A program made the translations under genes and the position numbers. Source: Anthoceros angustus (Eukaryota > Plantae > Anthocerotophyta). Taken from it: a DNA stretch of 64,000 nt. Positions 7,222-53,479 of this stretch are shown here, piece after piece (position 1 is the first letter of the stretch; each line of letters opens with the position of its first letter). The notes under the pieces were generated by a model. It searched no databases. It worked only from the letters and a program-made list of their open reading frames with translations, and had not been told where the DNA came from. Location: assembly GCA_010909165.1 (NCBI GenBank), contig VJWM01000172.1, positions 1 through 64,000 of the forward strand. The letters are read 5' to 3'.

Positions 7222-7223
7222 AC

Positions 7224-10200
7224 GTACTCAGATTCGGTGGAAGAGAGTGCTATGGCGGTTTGCCGCTTAGATCCCCAATCAACGGCGGCGTCACAAAGCA
7301 TCAAGGCATAGCCAGAGGTAGATTTCTTTGAATCCACATCTCCCCCCCAATCCGGGTCGGTGTAAGCCGAGAGTTGAGGGAAGGAGGGTGGAACTGTGTT
7401 GCCGGCACTAGGTCCATGGTACTTGAGTCCATAAGCCATAGTCCCCTTGAGGTAACGTAAAGTGCACTTAAGGGCGGACCAATGAGCGGGTCCTGGATTC
7501 GCCATCTGTTGGGAGAGGACACGAACAGCGTGCCCGATGTCAGGGCGCATGGTCGTACAAATCCAGTTAATCCACTCAACGGCTTCTTGATAGGGAATGG
7601 TCTCCATGTACTTGCGCTCCTTGTCGGTCTTGGGTGCCTGGTCAGATGACAAGGGTGCACCAACGGCGAGCGGTGTAGATGCAGGTTTGCATTCTAGCAT
7701 ATTATATCGGGTTAGAGTGTTCTTAATGTATTGCATTTGTGTGAGGTGCAAGGTTCTAAGTGTACGTTCGCGAGTAACCTTCATCCCAATGCAATAATGA
7801 ATATCGCCTAAGTCGGTCATACTAAACTTAGACTTAAGCATGAGGATGGTCTTATTAAGGAGCCCATGCTTGTCATTGCTAGCGAGGATGCAGTCATCCA
7901 CATAGAGTGCGAGGTTGACAAGTGCATCTCCTGACCGAAGGACATAAACATTACCGTCGGATGGGCACTTAGTGAATCCGCACGCCAAGAGGAAGTCGTC
8001 CATGTAGACGTTCCAATTCTTAGCGGACTGTTTAAGGCCATATATGCTGCGCTGAAGCAGACATACAAGATGTTCGCAGCCTTTTTCTTCATAACCTTCA
8101 GGTTGACGCATATATATCTCCTCTTGCAGCTTGCCGTAAAGAAATGCCGTTTTGACATCGAGCTGTACCACCTCCCAATCGTGATATGTAGCACATGCGA
8201 GACTAACGCGCAATGAACTAGTCTGGACAACGGGGGAGAAGAGATTATCTGCATCATAGTCGTCCCCTGCACGTTGAGTGTAGCCTTGTGCAACGAGCCT
8301 CGCCTTGTAGCGGTCTATGGCGCCATCAGCAGTATACTTTATCTTGAAAGTCCACTTGTCACGACCACCGACCGTGGTAGGTCAAAGGTGCCATGTGTTG
8401 TTGGCTCAGAGACTGGAACTGCTCTGTCACCGCCTTCCACCCTGCAGCTGGCCGGAAGGCGGCGTAAGTGTGGCGCTCCCGAGACTTCCGAAGTGGATAG
8501 CAAGACTTGAACGGGAGTAAGTGTGGCCATATTAGTGGCCTGCGTGTTGGGAGGTCCCTGAGAGTGCGCTAGGTTCTCGAGCGCTTTCCTGCTAAGTGTC
8601 CGCTCCCTCGTCGAACGCCGAAGGGCAGGAGGTCCATCAACAAGAGGAGGTATGTCAGGGGGATGAGATACCTCTTCCGCAGCGACGAGGGGAAAGCCAC
8701 CAAGGTCGAGGTTCGAGTCTCCGCTGCTAGATGGCAGGGGAGTGAAAGGAGCTCGAGAGGTGGATGGAGTGGCAGGAGAAGCGGGAGAAGCGGGAGGAGC
8801 CGGCACCAGTGCAAAGGGAACAAGCGCAATCACCGGTGGACGGATAGCAGCTTGAGAAGCATGGGGAGCATATGTAGCTGGCGGTGGTGCGGGCTCCCAT
8901 TCATCCTCCCCCCCTGCACCAGCGTCAGTAGAAACATCCAGGGGAGGGACGGGAGGGCGGGAGGAGAGGAGAGGTACGTCAACATCTCCCCCAGCATCGG
9001 GGGAGAGAAGAAGGGGTTCCTCGTTGAAGATATAGTCGCGAGCAAAGACAAGGCACCGGGAATCCTTCAAATATATCCGGTAGGCCTTGACGGTTTCGCC
9101 ATAGCCAAGGAAGATACCTTATGTAGACTTCGAATCGAGCTTCCGCCTGAGAGCCTTAGGAACATGAACGAAAGCCTGGCAGCCAAAAATACGGAGGTGG
9201 CTGAGATCGGGCTTGCGGCCAGTCCATGCTTCATAAGGCGTTTTACCATCAACAGCCTTTGTGGGAAGGCGATTGATAAGGTAGTTGGCTGTATTCAAAG
9301 CTTCAGCCCAAAAGCGGTTAGAGAGGGAAGCATGGTGTAGCATAGATCGGCCCATCTCCACCTGAGTTCGGTGACGGCGCTCGGCAACCTCAATCTGCTC
9401 GGGAGTGTAAGGAACGGTGGTTTGGCGGATAATACCGTGTTGGCAGCAATGGTCGCCGAACGCAGTGGAGTCGAACTCCCCCCCACCATCGCTCCGAAGG
9501 ATCTTTAGCTTACTGCCAAGTTGATTCTCCACCTCAGATTGCCAAGTGAGGAAGGTGGGGAAGGTATCGGACTTGGCGGCAAGAAAGTAGACCCAACCGA
9601 AGCGGGTATGGTCGTCGATAAAGCTGACTTGATACAGGGACCCCTGGAGAGAAGGTGTCTGCATAGGGCCAAGCAGGTCAGTGTGGACTATACCAAGGGG
9701 GTGAGGACTCCTATGGGAGCCGACAGGGAAGGGCTTGCGCTGCTGTTTGCCGAAGGCACAGCTACGGCAAAAGGAGAGGTGAGCAACGGATTTAAGAGGG
9801 AGACCCAAGACGTAGCTGTCTTGAGCCAACGCCTTCATCCGTTGTGTCCCGGCGTGACCCAACCTAAGGTGCCAAAGATCGGCCAAGGGAGATGACACAT
9901 GAGAGCTGAAGGAACTGTCGGGGTGAGACAGACTCCCCCGCTCAGGCCGGGATAAAACCTCATGGGCGGTATAGGTGGGGCTGGTGCCTAACACAAAGAG
10001 CCGCCCAATCCGTTGGCACACAGTGATGAGTTGGCGAGAAGCGTCGAAGATGGAGCACTTCGTAGGGGCAAAGTTGAAAGTATAGCCAGCTTCGAGCGCT
10101 TGCCCAACGGAAACAAGGTTCTTACTTAGGTGGGGCACATAGAGCACGCGGAGCTCCGACTGAGTATTGGGCAAAGGATAGCAAAGGTCTGGAGCCACGA

Positions 10201-11199
10201 ATGCGCTGCGGGTATCATCACGAGGTAAACAAAGCTCGATGTTGTTCGCTTCAAAAGAAGTAAACCACTCACGCCGGCCGGTCATATGCTAGGTGGCCCC
10301 TGAATCCACAAACCACATATGAGTGTCAAGCATTCACAAACGACGATAGACGGCGTCAAGTGAAGCGGCCGGCCGACGGAGGGCCGAGCGTTGATCGGCG
10401 AGACGCTTGAATCCTACTGTGGTGTCTCAGCAAATGCAATAGAAGCAAGCCCCAAGCTTCCGCTTGTCGTTGGAGGAGCCAAGTCAGGGGTTGCCCTGGG
10501 AATCAGGCCCGGGCTCTTGAAGGGCGCCTCGCCTCCGCCGGTCTCCACCGCGAGTGCGATACCCTTCGGTGTGGAGGTCTCGCCGGCCTTCCGGTGCTGC
10601 TCTTCCTGGCGGAGGAGAGAAATCGTCTCATCAAGGGTTCTGGGGTTAGCTGTCTGAGTCATAACCAAAGCAGACCACGAAGGTGGCATGGATTGCAACA
10701 ACTGCACGGAAGCGTCGTGGTCGGACACTGTGGTGCCCGCCAATTCGACAGAGTCCTTGAGGGTCATAAACTTGTTGACAAACTGCTCGATGGACTCGGT
10801 CTCAGACATGCGGAGGCTGTAAAACTTCCGCGTCATAAAGCCCTTGTTGACGGCGTTATCAAAGACGTACTTTTTCTTCAGACAATCCCAGACCTCTTTG
10901 GAGGTAGGAAAATGTCGGATGACGCTCATCTGGGCGTCCTTCATGTATAGCATCAAATTTGCACGAGCCCGGCGGTCCTTAGAGTCCCACTCGTACTTGC
11001 TGCCGGGTCCACTGACCGGCGTGGAGCGACGTGTGCCGCCTGGGGTAGGGGGTGGAGTGGTAGGGCGCAGATCGGTCCCGTCGACTACGCCAAATAAGTC
11101 TTCTCGGAGGAGAAAAACCTCGATTTTGCGACTCCAAGCCGCGTAATTAGTCCCATCGAAAAAGTTCACGAGCTTACTAGCGGAATCATTAGATGCCAT
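7224..11199 (-). pseudogene. Copia A gag-pol (gag, protease, integrase, RT), few lesions
   Basis: Gag UBN2-like (FFDGTNYAAWSRKIE, LLQSMPPSW); protease WFVDSGAT*HMT with in-frame stop; LWHLRLGH; IVHTDLLGP, LRSDGGGEF, PEQIEVAERR; RT QLDVKTAFLYG, IYGLKQS, LYVDDCIL; RH AYTDPDWGG. Confidence 0.95.
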
Positions 11200-12138
11200 A
11201 ATAGCATAAGAAATAGGAGCAGAAGCCAAAACGTATCACAAAGTGGGTTCCGAGTCCAGGGCACTGGTAAAAGTAGAAGGCGGATCAAGTTCACGAAGGT
11301 GAGCAAAGACGTCAACCAGGTCCAGATTAATCTGCGCCAGGGAATTCCAAAGGGAAGACAGCCGGCCAAATTGATGAGCAAGAGAAATGGTGGACGTGTC
11401 TTGCTCGTTCGGCGGATCTTCGATCTCCTGTTTGATGGTGATGGTCTCGGAAGCAGGAAGCCGCATGGCCAAGCCGCGAGTCAAAGTAGGCAGTGAGTGA
11501 AGAGATCCTGCAGGGGATGGAGTAAAAGAGGGTGGAAAAGTAAAGGTAGGTGTAGGGGTAGGGGATAGATCCTCCCCTAGGGGGAAGAGGGGTAGAGGGG
11601 TCCCAACCGCGCCACGGCCGGTGGACGGGCCGCCGCGCCGTTAAGGGCGGCGCGCCCGGTGACCGGAGGGCTATGGCCGCCAGGGTCACCGATTCGCCCC
11701 GCAACGCCGTGCGCCGAATCGCACCCGGCGCCGAAACTATGGCCGCGCGGCGGGCACTATGCCCGCCAAGCGGCCGCGGGGCGCCTGCGGTCTAGCCACG
11801 CTTACCCGGCGCCTACGCCGGGCGCCTTGCGCCAAGCGTCCGGCCGGGGTCGCGCGATCTTGCCGAGTGTGCTGGCTGACGGGGCTGGCGGTTGCTCCTC
11901 CCTGGATTACCGGGTATGGCACGCAACTCGGTGGAGTGCAAAAATTCAGAAATCTCAGCAAAAGTCCCCGGATTTCTTGCAGAATTCACCAAGGTTTCTT
12001 CAAATTCCGGATCGCAGGCCTCAGACTCCATGTCCTGGCGCCGAACCGCCGCAGATCGCCTTCACCCACTGAGAGGGACATCCAGGGCTTGGGCACCGAC
12101 AATTGTTGTCGAGGGGAATTCCTTGAGGATGTGAGGCC

Positions 12139-12397
12139 TGAAGATTTTATGGACTAATGTAGATCAATTAAACATTATAGAATAATTACATTGTTGGATC
12201 AAGAAAGAAGTAAGTTGCTTATGCATGAAAAGACAACTAAAACTAAATTTAATGAAACGTTGTATCTATTCACTTAGAGACGTAACCCTAATGAAACGAC
12301 ACCATATCTAGTAAACCCTAGCTTATCATATCTTGGTAATATATGGATAACTTAAACCCCTAAACCCTAACTATGATATCAACATTGTATATCATTA
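12139..12397 (-). repeat. Copia C 3' LTR (TA...CA termini)
   Basis: 258/259 identical to 26462-26720 (aaatttaatg vs aaattcaatg). Confidence 0.97.
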
Positions 12398-13019
12398 CTC
12401 CCACTTGTTGTAAATAGTTAGGTACCCCTTCAAATTGTGAAGCTAGATCTGGAGTTGAGCTCCGGTTTTCCAATCTTCGGTTTTGCCATATTGTGTGAAC
12501 ATTTATAATATTCATACCGGCGGAATAAACAGAAGCGGCTTTTGCAATGAATAAACTGGAAACCCAAGGGGAACATAGCAACGCCTGATCCCGCCATTTT
12601 CCAAAAAATGCTTCAAAATTATTGCTTTGTGTGGGAAGCCGGGATAATGTCATGACATAGGCTGGAAAAGGATATACAACCTCGATGGGCACACATTTGC
12701 CTTGAAATAATGCCCATACATGACTTTTTTGGTGGCTAAGAGGGCACGAGAGGCCTCTTGCTATTCATTCAAGACGAAAGGGTATATGATTTTGGAAAAA
12801 CCGCTTTTAATGAGGGAGTAATAACTATTGGAGATGACAATGAAAATTCAACATGCAATGCAAGTCCTGTTTCCATCTTCCAGAAATCAAGACATGCAAT
12901 TGCCGTTTCCATGCCTATGGTGTGTGTTTTGTACCTGTCGAGTCTCACCTGCTTCATGGATGGGTGCTATCAAAGAAAAAACAATCTGGCAAGGGGAACA
13001 AAAGTCTCCAGAAGAGTGA

Positions 13020-13740
13020 GGAGATTGACTTACCTTAGAGAGAACTTTTGGACGCATGGACTCGAGAAATTCCGCCCCTTCTGACAAACATCGAAACATA
13101 TGGATATTGAATGCGGTGAGAGCACGGAGGCGCATGGGCGCCCATCAGATACATCTTCTGCAGACGGTAGAAACAAGTGACTTACCTTGACAACTCGTGG
13201 ACGCATGGACTCGAGAAATTCCGCCTTCCGACAAACGTTGTAACATATGCGGAGTGTGTAAGCGGAGGGGCGCTGCGCGCGCCCACTACACCGCCTAGAA
13301 ACAAGTGACTTACCTTGAAAGAACTAGGGACACATGGACCCGAAATGCCGTCCCATCGACAAACGCGTTGAAACATATGAGGAGCGAATGGCGGGCTAGG
13401 GTATTGTCGGTGGAGGCCGCATGCTGCCTCCACTATCTATATTTTCTACAAAGGTAGAAACAAGTGACTTACCTTGCATAACTCGTGGACGCATGGCCCC
13501 GAAATGCCATCCCTTCAAAACGTTTAAACACATGAGGAGTGAATCAGGCGGTGTGCGAGGCGCGCCGGGCGCCCCACGCTTACCGCTACAACGGTAGAAA
13601 CAAGTGACTAACCTTGGACAGAACTAGGGAACACATGGACCCGAAATGCCATCCCATGTGACAAATGTTCAAACATATTAGGAGTGAACTGCAAGCTAGG
13701 GTATTGTCAATGATGGCGCGGGATGCCGGCGCCCACGGAA
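13020..13740. repeat. Five degenerate tandem units of about 130-160 bp in the Copia C 3' region
   Basis: Core 'tagaaacaagtgacttaccttg...ggacrcatggacccgaaatgcc' near 13025, 13175, 13303, 13463 and 13602. Confidence 0.9.
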
Positions 13741-14879
13741 TTTTTGGAAGACAACACCACGTAAAAGCATGGACCCAGAACGCCTTCATTACATAGCGGC
13801 GTAAAAGCGTCGACCGTGTTGAACCTATCTAGTAATCCGTCCGAGTATGAAACTCGGAAGCCAACATACGCTAACTCTATCGTGAAAACAAAACCCTAAA
13901 ATCTCTAGTCTTGGGACACCGAATTCCTTCACAACCAAAGGACATCCATCATCCACTTCATGGTCATCCCTCCTCTCAGTGCAGATAAGGTCGTGATTCA
14001 TTCTATCTCGAATAGCCTTCTTGTCGGAGCGTAAAGGTGCTTTCTTGCATTGAGGTTGAACCCATAATAGAGAATAATAGTCTTATTCACAAATAGTTTC
14101 GAATGTTTTGGGTAAATTTCTCTTCCCACTCTCTTCCCATTCGCGATCGTCGATTGTCGGTCCTCTAACAAAGAACTCCTCAACATATTTCCCTTCAAAA
14201 GCATCGGTTGCTCTCCTGTATCTGGACCATAAGAAATGGGTTCGCACAATCAAGTCTCGCTTTCCACCTTCCCAATCCGAAGCCACATGTGTATCTCACG
14301 AGCATGGAGTTGCAATGAACATGCCCTTCCTTATCTCTTTGACATCTCCATTCATCCTTTCTATTTCTTGATGTTGTCGACTTGACTCGGTGAGCTCCCA
14401 AATACATATCCTGCTGAGGACCGATGTTTTGTCGCTTTGTCTCTCTCATTGCTTAGTCGCACTGTGATGCCAAAGCTCCTTCAGAAACCTCTCGCAAAAA
14501 TGGAGACGACACAGTATTATATCGTATAAGATTGTTGCACAACCAACACCGTAACATGAACATGGGTGCACCCCTGAGGGGCTGCAGCTGCCCTCCCGCA
14601 TGGCGGAAAAGCTTTGGGGCACTGCCTCCCCCGAGAGCTGAGGGGGCTACCGCGCCACGCATGTACCGACAGGGTGGCCCAAAGACAATGGAAGCACTCT
14701 TCCGCCACCCGCAACCTATGTGAGTCTTGCACATTGGTATCTACATTGCCACACCTCTGCGGGCAGAAGCACGCGGTGGCCCACATATGCATATACACTC
14801 AGACAGATGTAAACAGGCCATGCATCCTTCCGCAAAAATGGTTCTTAGAAACTATGCACATCCCGCAGGATATGAAGAA

Positions 14880-15560
14880 CAAACCTTGGTCCGCTTCCGA
14901 AGTGTTCCGGATGGTGCGCTCACCCTTCACATAAAGAGCAAGTGGAAAACCTATTAGACTTTGGAATCCTAACCTTCGGAAGTTGGTCCTCCGAGGGTCG
15001 AGAAAATAGGGATCGACCAACCGCATACTAGACCGTGTCATATCCCGATCTGGGCCCGGATCTCCAACTTTGAGAACGTGTCCGCGGTGTGGAACACATC
15101 AACGTTTGGCAGCCTTTCCGCCATCACTTGAAAACTGTATCCATCCGTAACGCTCCCGATGTGTAGATGGTTGTCGCGATTCACTCTTGACCCATCCCCA
15201 CGGTGCATTGCATAACACCGCTCTTCAACTCCTCGTACCTCTCGAGCCGATGCGGTATACTCTTGAAAAGCTTGCAAACAACACCGAATGCGCTCGCCCC
15301 ATTATATGCGTGATGACCTTGTCCTTTCCGTGGCCCGTAAGTCCACGACCGTGAGGATCAAGAAATGTCTCTTGTTTCTCCATTCGCAAAACGATAACGT
15401 TGCTCATGGAAATTGGCCTTAGACATTGACCGGACGCATTGCTTGTTGCGGCATGGCTTCCTAAGTCCGTGACAACGTCGGAGTCGCTCTTCGACAAAGG
15501 ACTCCACTTGCCCGCCTTCTACGAACCACGGATTGCATGTCCCGTGGCGCCACAAATGTT
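14880..15560 (-). pseudogene. Frameshifted relic resembling the N-terminal/Cys-rich region of CMC-like (DUF7869-type) DNA transposases
   Basis: Reassembled frames give C..KPCRNKQCV, RCCLQAFQEY, HRGDG, FQVMAERLPNVDVFH, YFSTLWRTNFPKVRIPKSNRFSTCSLCE; no DDE core recognised downstream. Confidence 0.6.
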
Positions 15561-16808
15561 TCGCCGTGGTTTGGGGTGGAATGACCGTGCGCAGGCCGCC
15601 TTCCTGTCACTAAAGGTGCATCGACGAGGGGTTTCGACAACACCCTCCTTTCCTCAATTGGAAACAAACCCGGCGACGACGGTGCGTGGGAACTATTCGG
15701 TTCTTCATGCGCGCGGCCACTAGGACTCGCTCACGGTGAATACAAATTGATGTTCCTTGGTGTTCGAGGAACACCCCGAGGAATCCTTGGTGAGGTCGGA
15801 CCCGCCTCCAACCTTCATGCAAGCGCGGCATTTGGTGACATCGGGGGAACTGGCCTCTTCCGTGTTGGCATGCGTGAGGAGAACTACACGGAATTAACAC
15901 GACCATCTACTACCCACAAGCCATTTGAGATCTGTGGTGTGTTGTGCATCGGACAGAGGATCGGACGATTCAATCTTGCATTGCGTTTCCTTTTTCTTGC
16001 GCTGGCCCTCGGTTGAACTGCGATGACATCAAGTCCTCCCCTTCCTGCAACATGAAAACGCGAAGTTTAGCTGGGAGGAGAACATGAAGGGAACATTATT
16101 GCATGGGGTGCATTGGACACAACAAATATCGCTCACTTCACTGTCCATGCGGCTGTGAGTCTCCTGTAACATTCCTGCAGCAGGCGATGCCACTTCACCC
16201 ACGACACAAACGAAAGTGTGTTCTCCTGCAGGAAAAGGGAAATATAACGCCCAAGCCACCAACTTCAACGCGCCCAACGCACCGAGAAAGGCGCCGGTCC
16301 TACCAATGCACAAGTTGTAGACCTATAACGGCAAACAATCGCACGCCATCGTAATGGCGCCGCCCACCCAAAACGACACCACCATTAAGAGGTGTAGTTA
16401 GGACATTGTCCTAAAATGGAATTTATGCATTATGTACGTCGCGAATCCATGGAGGTTACGAGAACCGGGCAATGAAGGGAACCCTAACTTTTGTCGGGCG
16501 ATAAGGTCTTTAAAACCATTTCCCCCACCGTCTCTGGCACGAAGCGGCTTTACGTCCCCTTCAACTTTGTGATCGTGCGGACTCGCGAGCGAGAAGAGGG
16601 AGTGATTCAACGCTTGCCGGTGGATGCGTGGGGCCTTTGAGGATCATCCCCACGCAAGCAAGGAGGTGTTCTTCTCCCCAATGTTGCTTTCCACCTCGCA
16701 AAGTGAGAACTCTAATACGTGAGAATTCACCGGTTGATGCGCGTCCGCGTTCCTTGTGGCGAAATCATGGCATCGGGAGGGCACTGAGCAAGAAGGACCT
16801 AGCGGCCT

Positions 16809-19690
16809 ATGCTTGAACCACCTTCGAGATTGTGCGAAACCAAGAAGAAGGCGACTCGGTTGAGGCAGACGGAGGAAGTCGCGGATATGGCAGCACCCCA
16901 ATCGCCGCTGACAAGGATCGGTGGCAAAGGCCGCAGAACTGCATCGCGGAGGCGAAAGGATGTGGGTGGGGCGGCGAAGAAATCGAGCTCCGGGAATTCA
17001 GCAAAAGCCAGCACAACACAGGGAGGCGGAGCAGGCCCTGAAAGACAAGGAGGCTTGAAGGGGAAGAAGAAAACGCAACCCGATCCTGTGCCTTTGCCAT
17101 ACAACTTGGAAGAAACTATGCTCATCAGCCGACTAACTCAATCGATGCGAAATTGTCTAGGAAGGAGTGGTTTTGCAACAGTTTTGAGGCGCCGGATGAT
17201 GCGATATGGACACCGTCAAGCCGTGGGTTCTGGTTTGGACCAGCTAAGCCAAATCACCGAGCAAGAGTTGGCTGGGTTGTATGGGCAAGCTGGATTTGTC
17301 GAACGGAACCGAATTCGAGGTCCTCCTTACAACAAAGCCACACCAATCGGATGAAATTCGCCCAAAGGCGAGGAGTTCAAGGTTATCACCGTGGGCCTTG
17401 GGATGTTCAAGCTTAAGAAGTGCTCCCGGATGCCGACAACCGCCTTCCGAGAGGCTAAACAGAATCAACACGTATGGACGGGCTAACATTGTTTTGTGCT
17501 TGAATCAGGCTTATTTCGCTTGTAGCCGCATGTAGCCGTGAGGAGTTGGCTTATGGGTTTTGTGTGTCAGCAGTGGGAGGGCTTTCTATAAGCAACCGTG
17601 CTTTTGTCATGATCGTGGACCACCGGAGAGAAATGAGCATGCGAACTGTGGCAGCCCTCCCAACATCACGACAGAGGACCTCTCAGCATTTGAGGAAGAG
17701 GAGCTGGGCCCAAGATGAGCATGATGGACCATTGCCCGACATCCTTGGACAATCCGGCGAAGATGATGGAAGAAGCGGGGATGACTTGGAAACCGAGGTT
17801 AGAGATGCGAATTAATAATGGATTATGACATGCCTCCCGACTCTATGCTTGTGCCCACCCCTTATAACCCGCCAGAAGAAGCGCCGGTGATGGCGGGACT
17901 CCATTCCAGGTGTGGAGTCCTCCCAACCCCCATGCATGTTTATGGATGTGGCGGGAGCAAGGGAAGAGGAGGGCGATGATGCCTACACGCTGTGGTGGAG
18001 TCCTCCCAACCCCCATGCATGCATGTTTATGGATGTGGTGAGCAAGGGAAGGGTATGGGAGAACGTGGACAAAATTTTTGCAAAGTGGGAGGCTTGTGAC
18101 TTGGAATGAAGAAACATGTACAGGATTGAGCAAAAGAGCAAAGGCAAACGGAAAAGCGGAAGAAACGAAGTTGAGGGTATATTGGTGAAGCCCAAGGAGA
18201 TGCAGACAAAGCCATGGCGTTGCTTTCAAGGTATTCCCGCAGGGAGAGCGGGCAGCAATGTTATTAGTGCCACGAGAAAGTTCTCACCGGCCTTATGGAT
18301 TTGAAGGGAATGTCGATGAAATTATATTGCAAGAAATTGCATATCATCCAAGTGGCCATGGCGAAGCACTTAGGATGTTCATCTTTGAGATGGTGAGGCA
18401 AGAGTACCCACAACATTCCACCGACGAAGTAGTCAGTTCCGATCGCTGAGGGAAAGGTATGTTATCATACTCTCTGTTTCTTAGATCTTTATATGGTATA
18501 GGAGGCGGGAGGAGGAGGAGGGCGCCGATGCCGCGCCTCCTCCTCCTCCCGCCTCGGCTGGGCGCATGCCGCCCCGCATGACGGGCGCGCGGCGCGGTTT
18601 GATGCGCCGCATGCCTCACCCCCAATAGTAGGGGTTGAGGGAGGACGCCGCATGCCGCGCCTTACCCGGTCTAGATGCCCGAGGCCCGTGGAGGGCGCCG
18701 ATGCCGCGCCTCCCAAGATGCCTAATATTGACAAGCATCCTGCTTTTGTGCAGCAACAAAGACATTGAAGTCCTTACCAAGTGCCCGAAAACTTTCAGCT
18801 CATTTATGAGGTCAACACTTGGAAGGGCTTGAGGATGAGCAACTACCGCAGATAGAGACATTGAAGAGGGATTGTTGCACCACGCCCACCGGAGAAAAGT
18901 AAAGACGATTCATGCTCGAGATGTGCTGGATATGCGAGGTTTTGTGAGGAAGAGGAGTTACTCTTTGCTTGTGATGGATGTCCCACGTGGATTCGAGAAG
19001 GGCCCAAAGGATGGAAGGTTTGATATTTGGCAAGTTGGTAATGTTTTGCATTCCTTCCATGACTTGACTGAATGCGAGCAGTTCAGGATGATCATAATGC
19101 ATGGTGTGGAAGATTCACATATTGTGCGGGAGCCTATGCGGAAGTGGTGCCAGAGGGGTGGTCTTGTTTCATTTGTGTGGGACAAGACAAATGTCAACAA
19201 CGACAAGGGTGGGTTTGATACGGTGGAGTATGTCACCGCTGAAAGAAAAGCTCGAGTTGCGGGTCATTATGTTACCTAATGTTTTGCGGCACTTTCAATA
19301 ATGGTCGGTCGGTGATTGCCCACCATACGCTTGTGAAAAAGCGGTTTATCATTCACTTGACAAACTTGTTGTCCGTCCCTACCACGCCTTTAGGTTTGAT
19401 GATGAAGCTTATCAAGACATTCTCCAAGGAAGGGACCGGATATTGGATGCATGTGCGTAGTGGGTCATCTTTAATGGCTGCCTTGTTGTCCGCCGAAATT
19501 GTATTTCTATCGAGGCAAGAGGTGTGCGTAATTCATTCCACGCTGTACATGGATATGAAGTCACGGATGCGGAGGAGGAGCGACATGAGCCGCATCGCCG
19601 TGGTCCATCTCACCTGGGCCAAGGAGGTTTGCGTCGGCGAGAAGGATATTGGGAAGGCTCAAATTGTGCCTCTAGGGTCGAGCGAATGAA
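16809..19690 (+). pseudogene. Antisense cargo gene of Copia C; basic N-terminus, C-terminal beta-class N4/N6 DNA methyltransferase; many small frameshifts
   Basis: Consecutive + strand ORF pieces 16809-17354, 17281-17535, 17546-17815, 17912-18449, 18635-19689; MTase motifs IHARDVLDM..SLLVMDVPRG, FVWDK, P..PLGLMMKLIKTFSKEG-DRILDACA-GSGSSLMAALLS-GRNCISIE. Confidence 0.8.
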
Positions 19691-21199
19691 AGAAAGGACC
19701 TGAGACCGATGAGGGCACAGACACTAGAGGTCAGATGGCACACCGGGTTGACGGAAGGAAGACGACGGCGGCGATGGTCATGGACTCTTCGGAGAGATGA
19801 AGAACGCCCGAGAAACGCCACCGTAGTTCCCGATAGTGAAGCCGGTTTGTGTGCGCTTGAATCTTCGCACCGTGAACTTCCTTAGGTGGCTAGGACGTTT
19901 CTGCTTCGTGAATCAGATGTCGATGGGCCGTTGTCTTTGGAGTGGATGACACGGATCTTCTAGTAGCAAGTTGTTCGTTCCGCCATGAGGCCGCTTTTGA
20001 ATACATCCGAGCGGACGACTTACTTATAATCGAGCATTGCCGCTTGTCCGCAAGCATCTCGCACCCTAGCACCTTCATTGCGCACTTTGAACACGAAATT
20101 CAATGTCAATCACATTGATTGCTTGCACGGCGCATGTGCTTTCAAGAGACGTGTTTGGAGCGAATTAGTAATCGTATGAAAAGTACCAAGCGGCGGCAAT
20201 TTTTCCATAACCGGCGTACATTATTCCGCCGGTATGAATATTATCGTGTTGGTGGTAGAGCTTTACGCCCCATCTTCATGTCTTTTACGGACACTATGGA
20301 GTGCTGTTGTACCAGTGTGAAGCCAGCTGAGTACAGGTTGGCTCCCTTTATAATTCTCCTTCGCTCTTTGCCTCATATGCATCGATCGCCTTGAGAGAAG
20401 GTTACCCCGAGCCATATCGAGATGGCGCCACCGCCTTCGTAGTCCGAGGGTACTTTGCCCAAGAAACCGCAGAGCCTGTAAATGCTCTAGGCTTTGCTAG
20501 AGCAACGTCATGACCAAGAGGAGACTTCAACTTCAGCCGTTAAAGGGGCGTGAAGAGAGAACGTGGGCGCCCCAAAGGAACCACCAAGGAGTTTCTGCAG
20601 CGACGACGCAGAGGCTGCAGCTAAACAAGAGAACATGGGCGGCCCTTCTTCAGCGCGTGTCACTCCTTCTGGGCCAAGAGCGGCGACAAGAGTAAAAGCA
20701 AATCCTGCACATGTTCACCCTGATTTTGGCTTTTCTAAGAACGAAGCTAACCCTTGTGAGGACCTAAGCTTTCCCAAGCCTACAGACCTGTTCAAGGAAA
20801 CCCAAATTGTCTCCTACGGCACCATGAAGCACCCTCGCACCCCTATGTGGTATAGGGTTCATGTGGGCGACTAAACCGTGATGCGCCAGATCAAAGTTGA
20901 AGATTCTGGCGTATCCTCACCATGTTGTTAGCACGTATAGTAAGTCCCAAATTCCATTCCGTTCCTTGAGAGAAGGTTTTGATCCTTCCAAGAGGAGGAA
21001 GATGAGAGTCAAAGCCTGCACGGTGAGTCGAGTCTGTGGGGACTCATACTCTCGTGTCTCGTGATGAGACTCTTTTAATGACTACAGATGATGAACACTC
21101 TTCCTTCGGGCTGTAGTTAGAGTTCTCGCAGATGGATTTTACTTTGTCGCATCGCCAAGGAACTCCGAGGAGTCTCCAAGGCCAAGACTTTTAACATGT

Positions 21200-24100
21200 T
21201 TCTCGTGAAGCTCTTTTCCTAGAGCCTTAGTCAATATGTCTGCTGGATTGTCTTGCGTTGCCACATACTCGAGGTTGATTTTACCCTTGATTAGGTCTCG
21301 ATAAAATGATACTCAACCTCGATATGCTTTGTCCTTGCATGAAATACGGGTTCGAGCAAGTGACATGGAGCCCGGTCAGGTCCTTATGAGCGTACATGTA
21401 GGTAATGGTATACCCATTTCGCTAAGGAGTAGTTTGCACCAAATGATCTCTTTGCAAGCTGTAAGGACTCTATATTCAGCGCCGAGAGAGCAATCAGAGC
21501 TGTTTCTTGCTCATCCAAAGAATCGGTCCACCGCTATGCTCACAACGTAACGAAAGATCTCTGTTGTCCACGTTTCCAGCATAGTCAGAATCGGTGAAGA
21601 CCTCGAGTTCAAGTTGCTGTCCAGGTGTGTGGCAATATTTTATCCCTCGATGTGGTGTCCCCTTCAAGTATCTAAAGACTCTTTTAATGCTTGTCCAGTG
21701 CTCTTGGCCTGGGTTCTCCAGGAACTGTGAGAGAGCGCTAGTTGCAAAGGCAACTTCCATGCGAGTAGTGTTTGCTGCATATATGAGCTTGCCAACAGCC
21801 TGTCTATAAGGTACGGCTAACATCCTTTCCTTCTCTACAGCTGTTTGTGGGGACATTTATGAACTTAGCTTGATTCCACTTGGTAGGGGTGTGGCAGCTG
21901 GCTTTGCATCCTTCAAACCTAGCTGTTCTGCACTTTCGAGTATGTATCTTGGTTGTGAGAGTGTGATAACCCTGCGTTTCCTGTTCAAACATGTATACCA
22001 AGACAACTCAAGATCACCAAGGTGGACATCTTAAACTTAGTTGCAAGGTGTCAAGAATCTTTTGATAAAACCGCATCGTTACTTGACAAGATCGTCATCT
22101 ACATAGATCGCTAGGTAATGTAGACGATGTCACCTTTCTTGTAGATGTACAGCTACCATCCGCTCGGCTTTTGGTGAAACCTAATACTAAAAGCTCAAGA
22201 TCAAGTTCTGCGTTCCAAGCCATTGCATCGCTTCAACCCGCATAAAGTCTTGATAAGTTTACATACATAATCCTCCTTTCCTTTGACTACATAACCGGAG
22301 GTCAGCATGTATATTTCGTCAAGCTTGCCATTCAAGAATCTGTTTGACATCAAACATTTGCGCTCATAGTCCTTGTAGGTCGATATTGCACATAATGCTC
22401 AGATGGTTGGCGCTTCACAACCGGAGCGAATGTCTCCAAATAGTCCACGCTGAACTTGTGAAAATCCACGAGCCACTAGTCTTGCCTTGTACCTATCAAG
22501 GTACCATCAGCCTTGACTTTCAATTTGAAGACCCACTTACAAGACACCATTTTTCCGCCAGAGGTAATTTTGACAACTCCCATGTGCCGCTCTCAATCAA
22601 TGAGTCATATTCTGATTTTATAGCTTTCTCCCACTCCTTGTGATCAGGTCTGCTCAAAGCCTCGGCATAAGACTGTGGTTCTACAGGGTCGAGGTTAGTA
22701 GCAGCATATGCTTTCACATGTGAAGAGGAAATACGATAATCAGGGGCACGATAATAATCAGGAGGTCGACGTTCTCGAGTAGGGTAACGTCGAGCAAGCT
22801 CTGGCTCAGGTTCTTGTTCAAGTTGAGGGTCTAGATCTTGTTCAAGTTCAGGTTCTGAAACATAATCTGCTTCCTCGTCATTCTCGATCACATCGCCACC
22901 GCATCGCAAGTGCTTGATCCGTTGAGGAATGTGATCCTGACATCCGCGCATGTCAAGTGGAATTTCGTGTTCGTGTTCTTCTTCAAACACGCCGATTTTC
23001 CCTCCTGCAGAACATTTTCATCAACAGAGCTCGAGTACCATGATCCGCGATCATAATGAGAAAGCTCAAGACTATCCTCGCCATCGTGAGCATGAACATG
23101 TGCTCCCACCAAGCCCAAGTCTTTGTTTCATCAAGGTAACACTTGAGCATAAATGACCTTGTTAGAAGGAACATCATATAGTTTATATGCTTTTATCCCT
23201 TCCGTATCCCAACATGAGCAGCTCAAGGGGCCTTAGCCGAAAGCTTGGTTCGCTCGCCTGTATGAAGGCATATGCAAGGCAAACGTCCTCAAGTCTTTGG
23301 ATGGATGGTCACTGTGAAAGCTTCATAAGGAGTTTTGCCTTCACTGTGGTGGGTAACCCGTTCAAGAAAGGTTGAGGTCATCAAAGCCTCGCCCGAAGGT
23401 AAGGGCAGTTGAGCATCATGCGAATGAGGAGACCATCTCCTGCAGTGTGAGATTCAAACGCCTCGCCACTCCATTCTGGGGAGTGTATACCACGTGAGTT
23501 GACGCCCAATGCCTTCATCTTCTGAATCGCTGGAATTCATTAGAGGTGAATTCCCGCCATTGTCGATCTTAGTGTCTTGAGCGCTTTCTGTCCAACGCTC
23601 AAATGAACTTGATGTATTCCTTGAAATAGGAGAAACATTCGCTCTTGTTCTTGGGATGTAGGTGGTGACAAATCGCTTTTGTCATCTCAGAACGTTAAGA
23701 AATAACGCCCACCACCAATGGACGCTTGAGATAAGGGTCCACACAAATCAAGATGTACAAGCTCAAGTACATCAAGCACGGTGAGGTGCTTTGTTCTTGA
23801 AGGCTTTTGGTGTTTCTTCGACAAAACACAAGCCTCACATAAGGGTATAGGAGTCAAGGGGCCAATAGGTCCATCTTGATACAGTCACTCATGACCAATT
23901 TTGTAGCTTTGCCATGTGAGGATGACCTAGGCGTGCATGCCACAACCGAGCCTTGCTTTGTTGTGCGATGCAAGGAGACGTCTTGTGTCGTGGGACTCGC
24001 TACTCCATGCAAATGGAGACTAACAGATCATGGTCCAAGACCCATGCGCAAGTACCTTTCTAGGGTCAAATGCATCTATGATTCGCAACTGCTCTTGTGA

Positions 24101-25289
24101 ACACGACATGACGTATTGGTGATTCAATCTTCTAACAGAGATCAGGTTTCTAGTCATCTCGGGCACATGGTAGACATCTTCTAACTTGAGTGTGTTTCCA
24201 GTAGGAACTATTAACTCAAATGTGCCACGACCAGGTGAGACTAGAGACCTATCGTCCCCAAGGTAAACATATTGATCAGAAACTGATCTGTATGTTTTAA
24301 ATTCATTCCTATCAAAGCAGATATGTGCAGTAGCACCAGTATCTAAGAACCATTCTGTTGGTTTGATTCACTTTGGAGGAAAGACAAGTGGAAGCGAATG
24401 GACTAGCAAACTCCCTAGTCCCAAGTAAGAGCGATGGGGTATTAACCTTTTTACCACAACATTTGATTCGCTGGTTCCTCCTTGCGAGGAACTCCACCGC
24501 TTTTATGCACTCTTTTCCCAATGGCAGCGGCTTGCAGTTGCGGGTTCACAGCTTCTTTGTTTCTTCCGGTGAGGATCCGCCAGCTACCTCCCACGAAGAG
24601 TTTCCACCACCTCCTTTGGAGAAGGGCTTCTTCCTCCTCGTCCTTGTTGTGAGGTGTACAGGGCCTGTTGTTTCCCTGCTTTCTTATGGTTGGTCCTGCT
24701 GGCTTCTTCTTGCAGATGGAACTCACGAGTGTGAGAAGCTCATTTCAGGCATCTCTATGCCTTGCTTTTAGCTAACAACGTAGCTTGTGTTTGAGCAAGA
24801 TGAGAAGTCACGAAATGTGACCATGACTGAAGCGAAAGAAGGAGCCTCATCACCATCTCATCATCTCCAATGGCAACTTTGGAGGCACCACAGCCGTGAG
24901 GCTAGGGTCCTGAAGGTACTCACGTGTTTCTCCACCGAGTCACCGTCCTTCATCCTTAGGTTCAAAATTCCTTAGAGTCATTGCGCTTACCATGTTCGCT
25001 GCGTAGAGTTCCTTTAGACGATTCATGATTTCGGCCAAGTATTCACCCTGCGCCTCAACATCTCGGTTGTCGCCACCGCGTATGAGGTATTTGGCTCATC
25101 CTTAGCTAACCATTCTTCCTCTCCAAGATCCTCGTCTGGTTTCACTACTTTTCCAAGAGCATGTTTGAGGAGGCCTCTCATTTCGAGAACGCCTCCATTC
25201 TTATAAGCCGATGTCAAAGTCATTTCATGAACTGTCCTTCTCCTTGAAGGACTCACTTCAAAATTATGTGTAGAGGATGTGTCACCCAT
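21200..25289 (-). pseudogene. Copia C gag-pol, heavily frameshifted
   Basis: WFLDTGATAHIC (about 24320-24360), LWHARLGH (about 23930), integrase remnants, EPQSYAEAL..WEKAIKSEYDSL, PYRQAVGKLIY, FTDSDYAG, HIEVEYHFIRD..NPADILTKAL. Confidence 0.93.
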
Positions 25290-26449
25290 TTTGGGTTCTG
25301 AACTCCTAAGAGTTTGTCCTCTGATTGAAGAAGCTTTCTAATGTGTCTTCTTCCGGTCACTAGCATGAACACTATCATGGGCACTGTAGCCACTATTCTC
25401 ACCATCCATACATTCTACTTACAATGCGTGTTGGTTTTGTGGTTGTGTGTGCGTCTATGGTTTGTTCCCAAAGCGCTATGCGCGACTATCTTAGAGTTTC
25501 TCATCTCAAACTTATTGAATGCGTAAGTGGAGCATGAAGGGCAAGAGTTAGGTGTATCAAACTTCCTTTCATGCTTAGTTTTACTTACGTGCTTGCATCT
25601 TGTGCCTCGAATCTTTGGGTTGGCCAACAACTCGTTTCAACATTACAAGCTTGTAATCTAAGTGTGTTAGCTCTTTCAAATCCTGCATCAATGCTAGCCA
25701 AGCGACATGACACAATCGGCGACATGACTCAATCGACATCTGTTTTCAACATTCCTATTATTAGCCTCAAGACGCTGAACAATTGTGTTTACACCTACAG
25801 ATTGTACAACACCTGTTGTGAGGAAGCCGCGTTGGTGTATGTTCTCAGGAAGTGGCTGATGTTGCACCGCTACTGTCAATTGTGAATGTCAAGTCAAGCT
25901 CTGTTGGGAATAGCAATTCGAGAAGTGTGTTGAAAGCTCCTCGCAATGCGTCTCCTTGTGCTTGATTTCTGGGCAAGTTGCTCCACTGTAGGATGCGCCC
26001 ATGTAATTGATGTGCTGTGGTTTTGTCTCTCGGCATTTTCTCGATCCCCTTGGATTTTGATTGTTCCTCCTAGGATTCACCGGGATTTTGGTAGATGTAA
26101 TTTTCCATGGCTATGTGCCACGATTGTATATACAATGCAATTCTGCATTTTCTGTTTTCTTTATATGATTTTTACATATTTGCCACCAGTCAGTTTAGTG
26201 CCTCCATTGAATTGCTCAAGTAGCAACTCAACTGAAGTGCGCTAGACTATCTCCTGATCTTGCGTAATCTATATGAATTTATCAAAATAAAAATAGAAAT
26301 AAAAACAAGAATACATCCATTCTTTTCTATCTTATGTTTCTTGATTTTAACTTATTTATAAACAAGAAAACAATCAAGAAAGCATTGTGCATATTCTCTG
26401 ATGCACAATTTCAATGTGCATTCATTTGAATGCAACCTACACTAGGTTG

Positions 26450-26461
26450 GCTCTGATACCA
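26450..26461 (-). promoter_or_regulatory. tRNA-iMet primer-binding site of Copia C
   Basis: TGGTATCAGAGC on minus strand abutting the 5' LTR. Confidence 0.95.
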
Positions 26462-26720
26462 TGAAGATTTTATGGACTAATGTAGATCAATTAAACATTA
26501 TAGAATAATTACATTGTTGGATCAAGAAAGAAGTAAGTTGCTTATGCATGAAAAGACAACTAAAACTAAATTCAATGAAACGTTGTATCTATTCACTTAG
26601 AGACGTAACCCTAATGAAACGACACCATATCTAGTAAACCCTAGCTTATCATATCTTGGTAATATATGGATAACTTAAACCCCTAAACCCTAACTATGAT
26701 ATCAACATTGTATATCATTA
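26462..26720 (-). repeat. Copia C 5' LTR
   Basis: Direct repeat of 12139-12397, followed by TSD AGGCC. Confidence 0.97.
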
Positions 26721-27318
26721 AGGCCTGGGCACAAGGCGTGTAGCGTTGCTGAGCAGAATTGTAAGACAGGAATGCAAGGACATCGGGTGGTAAGCTCCGC
26801 ATCCATCTGGGCACCGAAGACAATCCAAAATTCACCAAATTCCTGGTGTCGTTTTTGCGGCGCGCATGTGCGTGGTGTCCCGCATGTGTCCTTTGCCCAC
26901 AGGCTCTAGTACGTGAGCGTCTTGCCATGGGGAAAAGCAGGAGGCTAGGGGGCAAGAGAGGGAAGAGGCAAAATGCCTCTCTACCATACTAGAAGCCATA
27001 AAAAGGGAGGTAGGGCTAGCAACCCATCAAATCTGATTTGAAGAGGGTTGATCTAATTAAAGAGGTAAACCCACCAAAATCTAGAGATTAATCGCGATGG
27101 TTAGTTGCTAGACCTATATGCTAAAGCGACTAAAAAACTATGCCTAGACTCATTTGAGTGCATGGGCAGAAAAGCAGCAATGCTATATTCGGGACGACAT
27201 CGTAGCATCCGAAGGTATTAGTGCGGTGATCGATAGTCTAACGTATGGCTCGTGCTTAGTCCATCTTCTGCCAAGATAGATGAACTCATTAGATCTAGCC
27301 ATCAGGATTAAGCATCCT

Positions 27319-27789: not shown

Positions 27790-28700
27790 GTCCTGATAAC
27801 TGCCAAATACCTTCCTTCCCTGCTTGAGTTAAGGAACAATATTTTGCTTCTGTCGAACTAAGAACTACAACCTGTTGCCCTTACTATTCCAGCTAGTAGT
27901 TGTGCCCCTAAGCAGGTAGACATAGGTGCTAGTGCTTTTCCTATCATTAAGGTTTCTAGCCCAATCGACGTCAAGCCTACGAGTTGGAGAGGCTCATCCT
28001 ACTTGATGTGTGATTGATATAGAAGTCCCATATTTGAAGTGGCCCTAAGGTATCTAAAAACACGTTTAACAGCCTTCTAGTGGTCCTGTGTGGGATTAGC
28101 TAGGAATTGTGATAAAGCTCCCACAAGATACATAAGGCTCCCTACTACTGAGGAGTAGGGAAGCTCATTGGTATTAGAGTATTGATCCTGTTGCTCATCG
28201 GCTATGCTAAGTTTAAGGTTAACTTCTATTGGAGTAGATATAGGTTTGATTTCTAACATTTTATACTTAGTTAAAATCTCATGAATATATTTTGATTGGT
28301 GGATGAATAGGCTTCTACCATTTCTATATCTAAGGACTTGAATTCCTAGATAGTAAGGAAGGTCCCTGCATGTGATTCTAACAAACCTTTTTGAAAGCAT
28401 TTACCTGGTATCTTCGAATATGTCCTTAGAATGAGGCATGAGTACAATATCATCTACATATATATAGACTCCTAACACAATGAAATGATTATCGGATATT
28501 CTAATGTAGATGTTGCTATCTAAGTCTAGCCTAGTAAAACCTAGGGCCGTAAGACTAGTATCTAATTTAGAGTTCCATTTCATGGCACTTTGTTTGAGTC
28601 CATATAATACCTTTAATAATTTACATGCATTATATTTTACCTTCTTTTTAATATGTATACCCTCGGATGTAGATATCATGATCGAGATCGCCATATAAGA
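27790..28700 (-). mobile_element. Degenerate AT-rich Copia RT/RNase H fragment
   Basis: AFLYGDLDHDIYI, LYGLKQSAMKWN, YVDDIVL, YYLGIQV, LPYSSVVGSLMYL; paralog at 47085-47750. Confidence 0.9.
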
Positions 28701-28855
28701 AAGCAGTTTTTATATATAGCTGGATTAGTTCATAATCATGGTGAGAGGCTAATGCCATAAGAGTTCTTAAGGATGTAATCTTAAGTACCGGTCAAGGTTT
28801 CTTCGTAGTCGGCCGTGTAGTTGAGAGTACCTTTTCACAACTAACCTTACCTTAT

Positions 28856-30100
28856 GTGTATGTGGATGATTTGATTATTGCTAGCAATAACATGGAACTC
28901 TTAGACTCAACAAAGAAAAGCCTTAATGCAAGCTTTAACATGAGAGATTTGGATGAGCTCCACTATTTCCTAGGAATAAAGGTGGAGAGGAATATGGCTA
29001 ACAAATTAGATCTCTTTGAGCCAACAAACGTATGTGGAGACCATACTAGAGCGTTTTGGCATGCAAGATTGCAAACCCATGAAGACGCAAATAATCTTCA
29101 ATGAGAAGCTATCGCAGGAGATGAGCCCTACAAACGAAAAGGAGAAAGAGAAGGTAGATAAGACTCTCTACCAACGTGCCATTGGCTGTCTTACATATTT
29201 GGCAACATGGACAAGGCCCGACATTGCGAGGAGGCGTGGGAGTTGTGAGTCAATTCTTGGCCAACCACGGACAATTACAACATTATCAAGCAATCAAGAG
29301 GATATTCGATACTTATGGCACAAAACATTGGAAGTTGAAATACCAAAACGATAGACAACAAGAGGCCGGTGGTTGGATTTTGCGATCCAAATTGGGCTAG
29401 AGATGTCGATGGCCACAAGTCTACCATGTAATATGTGTTTATGCTATTTGGGGAGCCATTTCATGGAGTAGTAGGCGTCACCCTCGTGGCTCTCTCTGAT
29501 GGAGTACATGGCAATATATGTTGCAACAATGGAAGCAATATGACTATGACGATTGCTCGAGAAATGGGATTTAAGCGAAGGTGCAATAACCATCTTCAAC
29601 GACAATAAGGTTGCATTTACTTAACGAAGAATGCTACTTTTCACACGAGGACGAAACACATTGAAATAAAGCATCACTTCATCAGAGAGAAAGTTCAATC
29701 CAAGGAGCTAGCTCTGAAACACATTGAAATAAAGCATCACTTCATCAGAGAGAAAGTTCAATCCAAGAAGATAGAGCTAGCGTATTGTCCCACTGTGGAC
29801 ACGCCTACAGATATTTTGATCGAAGGTTGACTTTAGAGAAGCACGTTAAGTTTAGCAAGATGTTAGGTTTAAAAGAGTAGTACCGATGTGTTGAGTGGGA
29901 GTGTTAGAAATCTATAGGATTGGTGCAATACATCACATATTAGAGTTATGAGAAATAAGTCCTAGAAGTATATAGGATAATCATAGGATCGAGATAGGGT
30001 TCATACTATGGAGAGTGTGTCAAGGCCAAGGGCTATATATATGTATGCATAGCACACCATTTTTCAATGTACTGAACTTAGAACTTACTGTGTTCTAACA
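28856..30100 (+). mobile_element. Truncated Copia 3' half (RT-RNase H, PPT, 199-bp LTR 29902-30100)
   Basis: YVDDLIIAS, HYFLGIKVER, YQRAIGCLTYL, KHIEIKHHFIREKV (duplicated about 65 bp), GAGTGGGAG then TGTTAG...CTAACA. Confidence 0.9.
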
Positions 30101-39924: not shown

Positions 39925-41180
39925 CTATCCCAAGACAGGGGCAGGATGGTACATGGGCATGCTAGTAGGCACAGCAGGACCAGCAACTCCAACTGGTCTT
40001 CTCATTTCAGCAAATTGTGCCTGCAACCTTGCCCTGCGCACTTCCTTTCGCTCAGCCAAAGCCACATACAGGGGCTTTGTTCCCACCATTCGGCCATTCA
40101 TTTCAGACATCGCACGGGTGGCCTCCTTAGGGGCTGAAAATGCCACAAATCCCGAACCCCTACTCCGACCTTGGGGGTCTCTCATAACCTTGCATGAGGT
40201 TATGGTGCCGAAATCTGCAAACAACTCTCTCAACTTATCGTTATCCGTGGTATCGTCCAGATGCTTAAGGTACAGATTCACACCCCGGTACTTGTGAATC
40301 CTCTCTTGTCGTTCGCGCTCAAACTTAGCACGCAGCTTTGCCTGCCTCTCAGATTTCTTCTGGGCTCTTCCAACATACCACTCCTTATCATCGAACTGCT
40401 TTCCATTCAACTCGGCCAGACTCTCCATCCTGCGTGTTCCAAGTTGACAAACCCAAAGCATTTCGACCTACCATCAACATCCCGCATTACAACCGTGACC
40501 GGTGATGTTGCCATGAGCTCCAAAGATCTTCCTCAAGTCCTCATCGGTTGTGGTGTCCAAGGTTCTTCACATAGACATTGTTGAACTTTGGCGCACCACT
40601 AGCTTGCTCCCTCTCCTCACGGCGGACAAATGGGCCCACAAACACTTGCTTGTCATTCCACATCATGCCGTTCACTTTTTCAATGGCGCTTGGGCATCCT
40701 CGTCCTTCTCGAATTGCACAAACCCATATCCTCTAGATTGGCTGAACCATCGGTGGCCACCTTGCAGAGAGGATTGACCCAAAGTTTGAGAATGTGTCAT
40801 AGAGGGCCCTATTATCAATCTGACTTGTCTAGGTTCTTGATGAAGATGTTGGCAACTCCGCTCATCCGAATACTAGAGTCCCTATTCGAATACATAATCC
40901 GAATAGGTTTCCTTCCACGGTGAAGTTCAAGACGCGTATGCGCGGCGCTAGCTTGGTAGTAGTTCACATATGCGTATCCCAGCGAAAGTCGCGTCATGCC
41001 ATCCCGACACACCCGAATAGAAACAATTGCCCCAACCTGGCGGAAGATCTCGTAGAGATGAGCTTCGGACACACTAGACTCTAGGTCCCCCACGTAGAGA
41101 GGAGGGGCCAGAAACTGAGTAGGAAACGCAGGTCCAAGTTGAGGAAGCGTTTGAGGGCACTGCGCTTGCACCTGCGCCAT
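39925..41180 (-). pseudogene. PABP: Processed (intronless) poly(A)-binding protein retrocopy, RRM1-4, no PABC domain
   Basis: [77 protein letters not shown]; frameshifts; no introns. Confidence 0.92.
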
Positions 41181-53201: not shown

Positions 53202-53479
53202 CGGAGTTCTCTCTTTACGCCTTCAAGGAAACCAGGAATTTAGACAACACTCCTTACAATTCCACCATCAGTGCAGCTAACAATGCCCTTTCTTCACAAG
53301 TCAACCCCCAAACCACGAGACTACGTGATGAACCAGACCCGGACCCGATATACAACCCACAAATCAGATGATAGTATGAAATCAGATCCCCGTTGCAGGC
53401 TCAAGGAATTGCTCAGTTCCATAACCTGCCCTTCCCACTCAGAGCATAACGATATCACCCAGAACCTAAGCTCACCAGT

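Follow-up and report, generated by a model that had tools for sequence, protein, structure and literature searches.

The Marchantia protein DN4MT1 and the bdelloid protein N4CMT are eukaryotic N4-cytosine DNA methyltransferases (MTases) of bacterial origin. Among mobile elements, the closest described systems come from red algae: a preprint on Bostrychia moritziana reports Plavaka, Mutator, Zisupton and Fanzor-type DNA transposons that carry PAG2, a PF01555 methylase fused to a SET domain, and PAG3, a ParB-like domain with a 2-oxoglutarate (2OG) oxygenase, with adjoining inverted-repeat arrays and with the PAG cassette moving between transposon superfamilies (bioRxiv 10.1101/2025.02.11.637652). 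MTases borne by retroelements are Dam-like (alpha-class) or cytosine-5 (C5) enzymes encoded in sense in the polyproteins or open reading frames (ORFs) of Ty3/Gypsy or DIRS elements, with none in Copia and none of the beta class (bioRxiv 10.64898/2026.05.21.726589). Other modifying functions have been described in fungal KDZ, Plavaka and other DNA transposons with TET/JBP dioxygenases, in VANDAL elements with VANC, and in Harbinger or MuDR elements with SET (PMC12730594). The window analyzed here is a stretch of 64,000 nucleotides (nt) from the land plant Anthoceros angustus (assembly GCA_010909165.1, contig VJWM01000172.1, positions 1 to 64,000 of the forward strand). The initial annotation of this window had described a beta-class MTase at 18872–19560 as antisense cargo of a Copia retrotransposon. 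Our analysis removes the claim of a Copia with such a cargo. We conclude instead, with a probability of about three in four, that the MTase belongs to a DNA transposon, decayed and non-autonomous, which is nested in a Copia with a defective pol, in the 3′ region of that element.

The MTase-like sequence lies on the plus strand and consists of two halves. The N-terminal and catalytic half (18839–19276) was recognized by phmmer, tblastn and profile alignment to 8urk. It contains an ORF of 135 amino acids at 18872–19276, which is open from stop to stop from 18839 and whose listed start is a TTG codon at 18872. This ORF encodes the peptide KTIHARDVLDMRGFVRKRSYSLLVMDVPRG and the motif IV equivalent DVPRG (18977–18991, with the D at 18977), after which come FVWDK and VEYV. 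The C-terminal, S-adenosylmethionine (SAM)-binding half (19338–19598) was recognized by frameshift-aware alignment and a Pfam match. Its pieces PLGLMMKLIKTFSKEG, DRILDACA, SGSSLMAALLS and RNCISIE occupy two alternating frames at 19387–19514, and motif I (..LDACA/GSGSS..) at 19443–19470 is C-terminal of DVPRG, so that motif IV precedes motif I. The peptides quoted in the initial annotation are therefore real and were found where it had placed them, in the ORF at 18872–19276 and the pieces at 19387–19514.

A phmmer search with the 135-amino-acid ORF against 1.84 billion protein cluster representatives returned six true relatives (P0001 and P0003–P0007), with E values of 4e-9 to 4e-4 and 30–39% identity. 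When the relatives were compared with the window by tblastn, the MTase locus was the sole place matched (E 1e-11 to 1e-15). For the broken C-terminal half, a frameshift-aware alignment was written for the purpose, in which the C-terminus of P0006 was compared with 19277–19720 and shuffled DNA served as the control. P0006 aligned on 19338–19514 and scored 85, while shuffled DNA reached 27 ± 4 (z 13.5); P0001, P0004 and P0005 gave similar results. With X placed at the breaks, the C-terminal peptide of the window matched positions 167–211 of PF01555 at E 9.5e-5 and 22.9 bits, the cut-off being 26.7. A resemblance arising by chance through the picking of frames would fit with the window pieces alone falling below this cut-off, and a Pfam scan of the two intact ORF pieces alone returned only noise; chance is nevertheless ruled out by the phmmer E value of 4e-9 in 1.84 billion proteins, by the z of 13.5 and by the colinear remnants of two partner genes described below, and its probability is negligible.

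Four frame breaks were found in the C-terminal part, at about 19386, 19434, 19458 and 19492. The homology across deletions that had been proposed initially thus stands, given the z of 13.5, with four breaks in place of the three then counted. A TAG lies in frame at 19458, and the TAA at 19277 that ends the ORF is followed by a further frame change, giving at least five frame changes and two stops in total. The window copy is a dead pseudogene. Assembly errors were considered as the source of the frame breaks and were not adopted, as the neighboring transposase and ParB-like genes are decayed too and a stop codon is present; raw reads were not at hand.

Four of the relatives (P0001, P0004, P0005 and P0006) score 30–50 bits for the Pfam family N6_N4_Mtase (PF01555), above the gathering cut-off of 26.7. 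A profile of the relatives matches M.RsrI (4e-9), M.MboIIA, CcrM, DpnA and an N4-cytosine MTase, and covers the whole domain of 8urk, with the D-L-P-R-G column of the family falling on D-P-P-Y-G of 8urk; family motif I aligned with motif I of M.RsrI. Judged by sequence, the family consists of beta-class amino-MTase homologues in which motif IV precedes motif I, and the class order assigned in the initial annotation is borne out by both the family profile and the alignments to 8urk and M.RsrI. A profile search of 5.8 billion proteins yielded 43 relatives, nearly all with PF01555 and none informatively named.

The relatives fall into two clades. The larger one, with A-D-[IV]-P-Y-G and D-L-C-C-G-T-G, includes most of them. 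The second, with [LV]-D-L-P-R-G and D-x-C-S-G-S-G, has five members (P0001, P0003/P0009, P0004, P0006 and P0007), all from a single sequencing run, SRR33208241. The window sequence, which reads M-D-V-P-R-G and L-D-A-C-A/G-S-G, joins the DLPRG clade in the tree with 100/99 support and on a long branch. When the window and the related loci were compared as DNA, no similarity emerged, which suggests that they belong to different genomes or to old lineages. The canonical (D/N/S)-P-P-(Y/F/W) tetrapeptide is absent throughout, being D-V-P-R in the window, D-L-P-R in its clade and D-[IV]-P-Y in the sister clade. Because D[LV]PRG is conserved across the clade, in all five intact or near-intact members, DVPRG is a clade trait and not a product of decay in the window copy. 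The initial annotation had taken DVPRG as a departure from DPPY and the copy as possibly catalytically dead for that reason; the copy is indeed dead, owing to its frame breaks and stops, and not through decay of this motif. Members of the D[IV]PYG clade are probably active, since three motif IV residues (Asp, one Pro and Tyr) are kept. The D[LV]PRG clade, in which the SAM-binding motif is kept and the aromatic residue of DPPY is lost, may recognize an altered target or serve as a partner without catalytic activity.

To place the family in its genomic setting, nine contigs coding for MTase relatives were fetched (L001–L009). A DUF7869 (PF25273) gene adjoins the MTase gene in six of these (L002, L004, L006, L007, L008 and L009), and in five (L002, L003, L006, L007 and L008) the gene immediately upstream of the MTase gene, on the same strand, is ParB/Noc-like. 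P0009 is a fusion of the product of this ParB-like upstream gene with the MTase. No reverse transcriptase (RT) was found in any of the nine loci. On contig L002, a D[LV]PRG-type element is accompanied by a RecQ-type helicase gene split by introns (13573–15960, plus strand) and by a Peptidase_C48 (ULP-like) ORF (11921–12982, minus strand), which indicates that SRR33208241 represents a eukaryotic nuclear genome.

Copy number, conserved acidic motifs and fold matches suggest that the DUF7869 protein is probably a DDE transposase with an RNase-H fold. Among named proteins, the nearest to it are the dozens of paralogues present in the liverwort Riccia sorocarpa, and further relatives occur in the ferns Ceratopteris and Adiantum and in Chara, Cymbomonas, sea urchin, oysters, corals and amphioxus. 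The protein occurs in multiple copies in Riccia, Ceratopteris, Adiantum, Chara and many marine animals. The alignment contains near-invariant DGMDQ, QLDN..ENKN and GHTH..IDQ motifs. An AlphaFold model (pLDDT 77) gave weak Foldseek matches to RNase H, TnsB, IstA and integrases, at E about 3e-3. The large ORF beside the DUF7869 gene in L007 encodes the N-terminal portion of this protein, as indicated by a BLASTP match to Ceratopteris P0093 (9e-27). A sequence search of the Protein Data Bank (PDB) with the DUF7869 protein returned nothing useful, a Pfam scan of the long DUF7869 proteins revealed no KDZ, Plavaka or other transposase model, and no mention of the term DUF7869 was found in the literature searched.

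The product of the upstream gene was also modeled (pLDDT 70). The top 22 PDB matches in Foldseek were all ParB, Noc, Spo0J, KorB or PadC (best E 6e-4, probability 1.00), and weak sequence matches to HTH_ParB and Spo0J agree with this fold, which supports a predicted ParB/Noc-like DNA-binding protein. In L007–L009, whose elements are of the D[IV]PYG type, intergenic palindromes recur at 9–22 copies per locus: CGATACCGGTATCG is present at 22 sites in L007 and 9 sites in L009, and a different palindrome, CGATCAAAACATCG, at 12 sites in L008. These palindromes may be binding sites of the ParB-like protein or targets of the MTase.

Remnants of both partner genes were detected in the window beside the MTase pseudogene. 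The C-terminal part of a DUF7869-type transposase lies at 14170–14509 on the minus strand (tblastn with P0081 and P0087, residues 368–487, E 4e-4), a weak match to the DUF7869-protein profile also being present at 14001–14249 (minus strand), and the N-terminal part at 14923–15301 on the same strand (hmmsearch E 3.7e-6 and 2.3e-4; tblastx to L002, L007, L008 and L009). The two pieces lie only about 420 nt apart, against an expected distance of more than 1 kb; given this short gap and the failure to detect the core, the transposase core has been deleted or has decayed beyond recognition. The C-terminal half of a ParB/Noc-like gene was found in several frames at 17891–18446 on the plus strand (hmmsearch E 2.5e-5 and 1.1e-3, the match at E 2.5e-5 spanning 17891–18301; tblastn with P0008 and P0009, E 1e-8). 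It is upstream of the MTase (18839–19600, plus strand), the same order as in L002, L003, L006, L007 and L008, and the divergent layout, with the transposase on the minus strand followed by the ParB-like gene and the MTase on the plus strand, is common to the window, L002 and L006. The homologous unit is accordingly larger than the 18872–19560 interval first proposed and runs from about 17891, in the ParB-like remnant, to about 19600. The interval that separates this remnant from the MTase pseudogene contains, in addition, a GGAGG/CCTCC-rich inverted repeat of 20 nt with a 14-nt spacer, of low complexity (18502–18555).

All three remnants are enclosed by a perfect 24-nt inverted repeat, a candidate terminal inverted repeat that direct comparison revealed nowhere else in the window. 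Its left arm, ATAATATTCATACCGGCGGAATAA, is at 12505–12528 and its right arm at 20221–20244. By our own estimate, about 1e-7 perfect 24-nt inverted pairs would be expected by chance in 9.4 kb. The repeat had 0 matches in the metagenome scan and is absent from loci L001–L009; the related contigs are too short to show where elements of the family end. Self-comparison revealed, immediately inward of the left arm, a tandem array of about five units of about 150 nt, 68–73% alike (13000–13760), which could represent subterminal repeats belonging to the nested transposon. An Rfam scan of the whole window returned nothing.

These neighbors also bear on whether the MTase could derive from a host gene, as a captured or decayed piece of, for example, a DN4MT1-like N4-cytosine MTase, with no tie to a transposon. 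Beta-class MTase genes can occur in land plants, Marchantia DN4MT1 being one. However, DN4MT1 has TSPPY and not D.PRG, and by this motif it is a different kind of enzyme from the window family; the neighbors in the window are transposase and ParB-like remnants; and several diverged relatives are found in one sample (SRR33208241), three of the five beside a ParB-like gene or a DUF7869 transposase. A host-gene origin is therefore very improbable.

The element that encloses the insert is a 14.6-kb Ty1/Copia on the minus strand (12139–26720). It has two 259-bp long terminal repeats (LTRs), the 3′ LTR at 12139–12397 and the 5′ LTR at 26462–26720, which form a direct repeat with one mismatch at 12250 (258/259 identical, 99.6%), and a 5-bp target-site duplication, AGGCC, at 12134–12138 and 26721–26725. 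The polypurine tract, AAGTGGGAG on the minus strand, adjoins the 3′ LTR at 12398–12410. The primer-binding site TGGTATCAGAGCC (26449–26461, minus strand) is presumably of the initiator tRNA-Met type, as is generally the case in Ty1/Copia. Between these signals lies a broken pol (21497–24367, minus strand), recognized by Pfam and by tblastn with neighboring Copia proteins: Pol_BBD is at 24023–24367 (minus strand; Pfam E 3e-23), an integrase-like part at 23552–24325, and RT/RNase H at 21500–22538 over three frames (minus strand), so that integrase precedes RT, and there are 67–90 stop codons per frame. As the LTRs are near-identical, pol was already broken at the last retrotransposition, which implies that this Copia was mobilized in trans. 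The LTR end and primer-binding site had 0 matches in the metagenome scan. A second, far better kept Copia at 6198–11235 (minus strand), with long ORFs (RVT_2, rve, gag-pre-integrase and Pol_BBD), has no DNA-level kinship to the carrier, and further RT fragments occur at 27880–29446 and 47128–47468.

The insert (12505–20244, about 7.7 kb) sits in the 3′ untranslated region of the Copia, with pol, which ends at about 21497, on one side and the polypurine tract on the other. The placement given in the initial annotation, between the Copia LTRs and antisense to pol, is thus correct, and it could be read as true cargo: the Copia lineage would have acquired the MTase region and would propagate it as its own, perhaps with an antisense-transcribed MTase that marks DNA. 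The region does lie between LTRs that are 258/259 identical in an element whose pol was already broken, so that the composite may have been copied in its present state, and MTase-carrying LTR and DIRS retroelements exist (bioRxiv 10.64898/2026.05.21.726589). However, the MTase is accompanied by transposase and ParB-like remnants and a bracketing inverted repeat, its relatives occur in RT-free DNA-transposon settings, and the copy is a pseudogene; known LTR-borne MTases are, moreover, Dam-like or C5 enzymes, sense-encoded in Ty3/Gypsy or DIRS elements. The MTase does not stand in the retroelement's own coding set free of the hallmarks of another mobile element. We consider the cargo claim unlikely, since ParB-like and DUF7869 remnants flank the MTase, the 24-nt repeat brackets it and the relatives are RT-free. 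A nested insertion, which the initial annotation had itself named as the outcome contrary to cargo, is favored here.

Several points weigh against the reading as a nested DNA transposon. No trace of the catalytic core of DUF7869 was detected in the window. No target-site duplication was seen beside the 24-nt repeat, where a palindromic 2-nt one (TA or AT) would be concealed within the repeat, and the window holds no second copy of the Copia or of the insert for comparison. The assignment of DUF7869 as a transposase relies on copy number, acidic motifs and fold matches short of E 1e-3, and the mechanism proposed below for intact elements is one that we only infer.

In the nested-transposon reading, intact relatives would encode a DUF7869 protein, a ParB/Noc-like protein and, directly downstream of the ParB-like gene, a beta-class N6_N4-type MTase, and the 24-nt inverted repeat would mark the boundary of the insert. 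In intact elements, the ParB-like protein may bind repeated sites within the element and, once bound, could direct the MTase to the element's own DNA. Dam methylation controls IS10 and Tn5 transposition in bacteria. Speculatively, the resulting mark might counter host silencing or, by analogy with this control, time transposition or couple it to replication. The window copy has no function and is a relic, because its MTase carries frame changes and stops and its transposase core is probably deleted; it has no consequence for the host. More tentatively, and with considerable doubt, the DUF7869 elements could represent a superfamily of DNA transposons not yet described in eukaryotes, found in streptophytes and in many marine animals, that carries a ParB-like and beta-class MTase module in plants and other eukaryotes. 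Such a module might place N6-methyladenine (6mA) or N4-methylcytosine (4mC) on the element that encodes it; in the D[LV]PRG clade it might instead work via a remodeled or non-catalytic site. Decayed copies like the one in the window would be spread further inside non-autonomous Copia elements.

Elsewhere in the window, exons of host genes are present at 39928–41210 (minus strand), 44441–45154 (plus strand) and 52806–53222 (minus strand), encoding an RRM protein, a protein kinase and an SPFH/Band 7 protein, respectively; the frame at 40818–41210 is RRM-like by eye only. With such ordinary exons nearby, the Copia and its nested insert lie in gene-bearing DNA. A PPR-E-DYW gene of the organellar RNA-editing type (55642–58468, plus strand) is split into two frames by an internal tandem duplication of 358 nt (56687–56986 and 57045–57344), 99% identical and not a multiple of three, which is either a very recent disabling event or an assembly artefact. 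The presence of a gene of this type marks the host as a land plant that edits its organellar RNA.

Beyond the relic itself, the relatives are of wider interest. About 40 unannotated beta-class MTase homologues travel with a ParB-like gene in transposons that appear to be built on DUF7869, which gains a likely transposase role. A kind of self-marking DNA transposon so far reported from red algae is extended to a land-plant genome, and the two conserved loops, D[IV]PYG and D[LV]PRG, offer concrete targets for studying whether transposons place 6mA or 4mC on their own DNA.

Comparison with known systems places the window family closest to the red-algal PAG2 and PAG3 transposons, to which it is likened by description: in both, a PF01555 MTase and a ParB-like gene occur in a DNA transposon, and the ParB-like, MTase and transposase genes of L007–L009, with their many intergenic palindromes, recall the inverted-repeat arrays of Plavaka. 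In contrast to PAG2, the MTase here has no SET domain, and in contrast to PAG3, no 2OG-oxygenase part was found in the ParB-like protein by Pfam or Foldseek, which gave ParB-family matches only. The transposase also differs, being DUF7869 with no Pfam match to KDZ or Plavaka, and the window copy resides in a land plant. With the bacterial and phage beta-class MTases (M.RsrI, M.MboIIA, CcrM and DpnA) the family shares the order of motif IV before motif I, and with phage ParB-MTase modules the pairing of an MTase with a ParB-like partner, whereas its predicted catalytic loop is D[IV]PYG or D[LV]PRG and not (D/N/S)PP(Y/F/W), and its members appear to be eukaryotic and transposon-borne. DN4MT1 and N4CMT are likewise beta-class N6_N4-type enzymes in eukaryotes, but they are host genes with (T)SPPY and not transposon passengers. 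A 2015 survey of eukaryotic adenine MTases lists no clade of the present kind and few N6-adenine MTases in land plants. Retroelements with a Dam-like MTase (DAM-LTR and DIRS) or a C5 MTase resemble the window family in that a mobile element encodes a DNA MTase, whereas the tie to a retroelement in the window looks like nesting. Transposons with TET/JBP, VANC or SET genes share the presence of a chromatin- or DNA-modifying accessory gene and differ in enzyme class and transposase. The element is thus of a kind already known, and its transposase type, host lineage and altered catalytic loop are the new variants.

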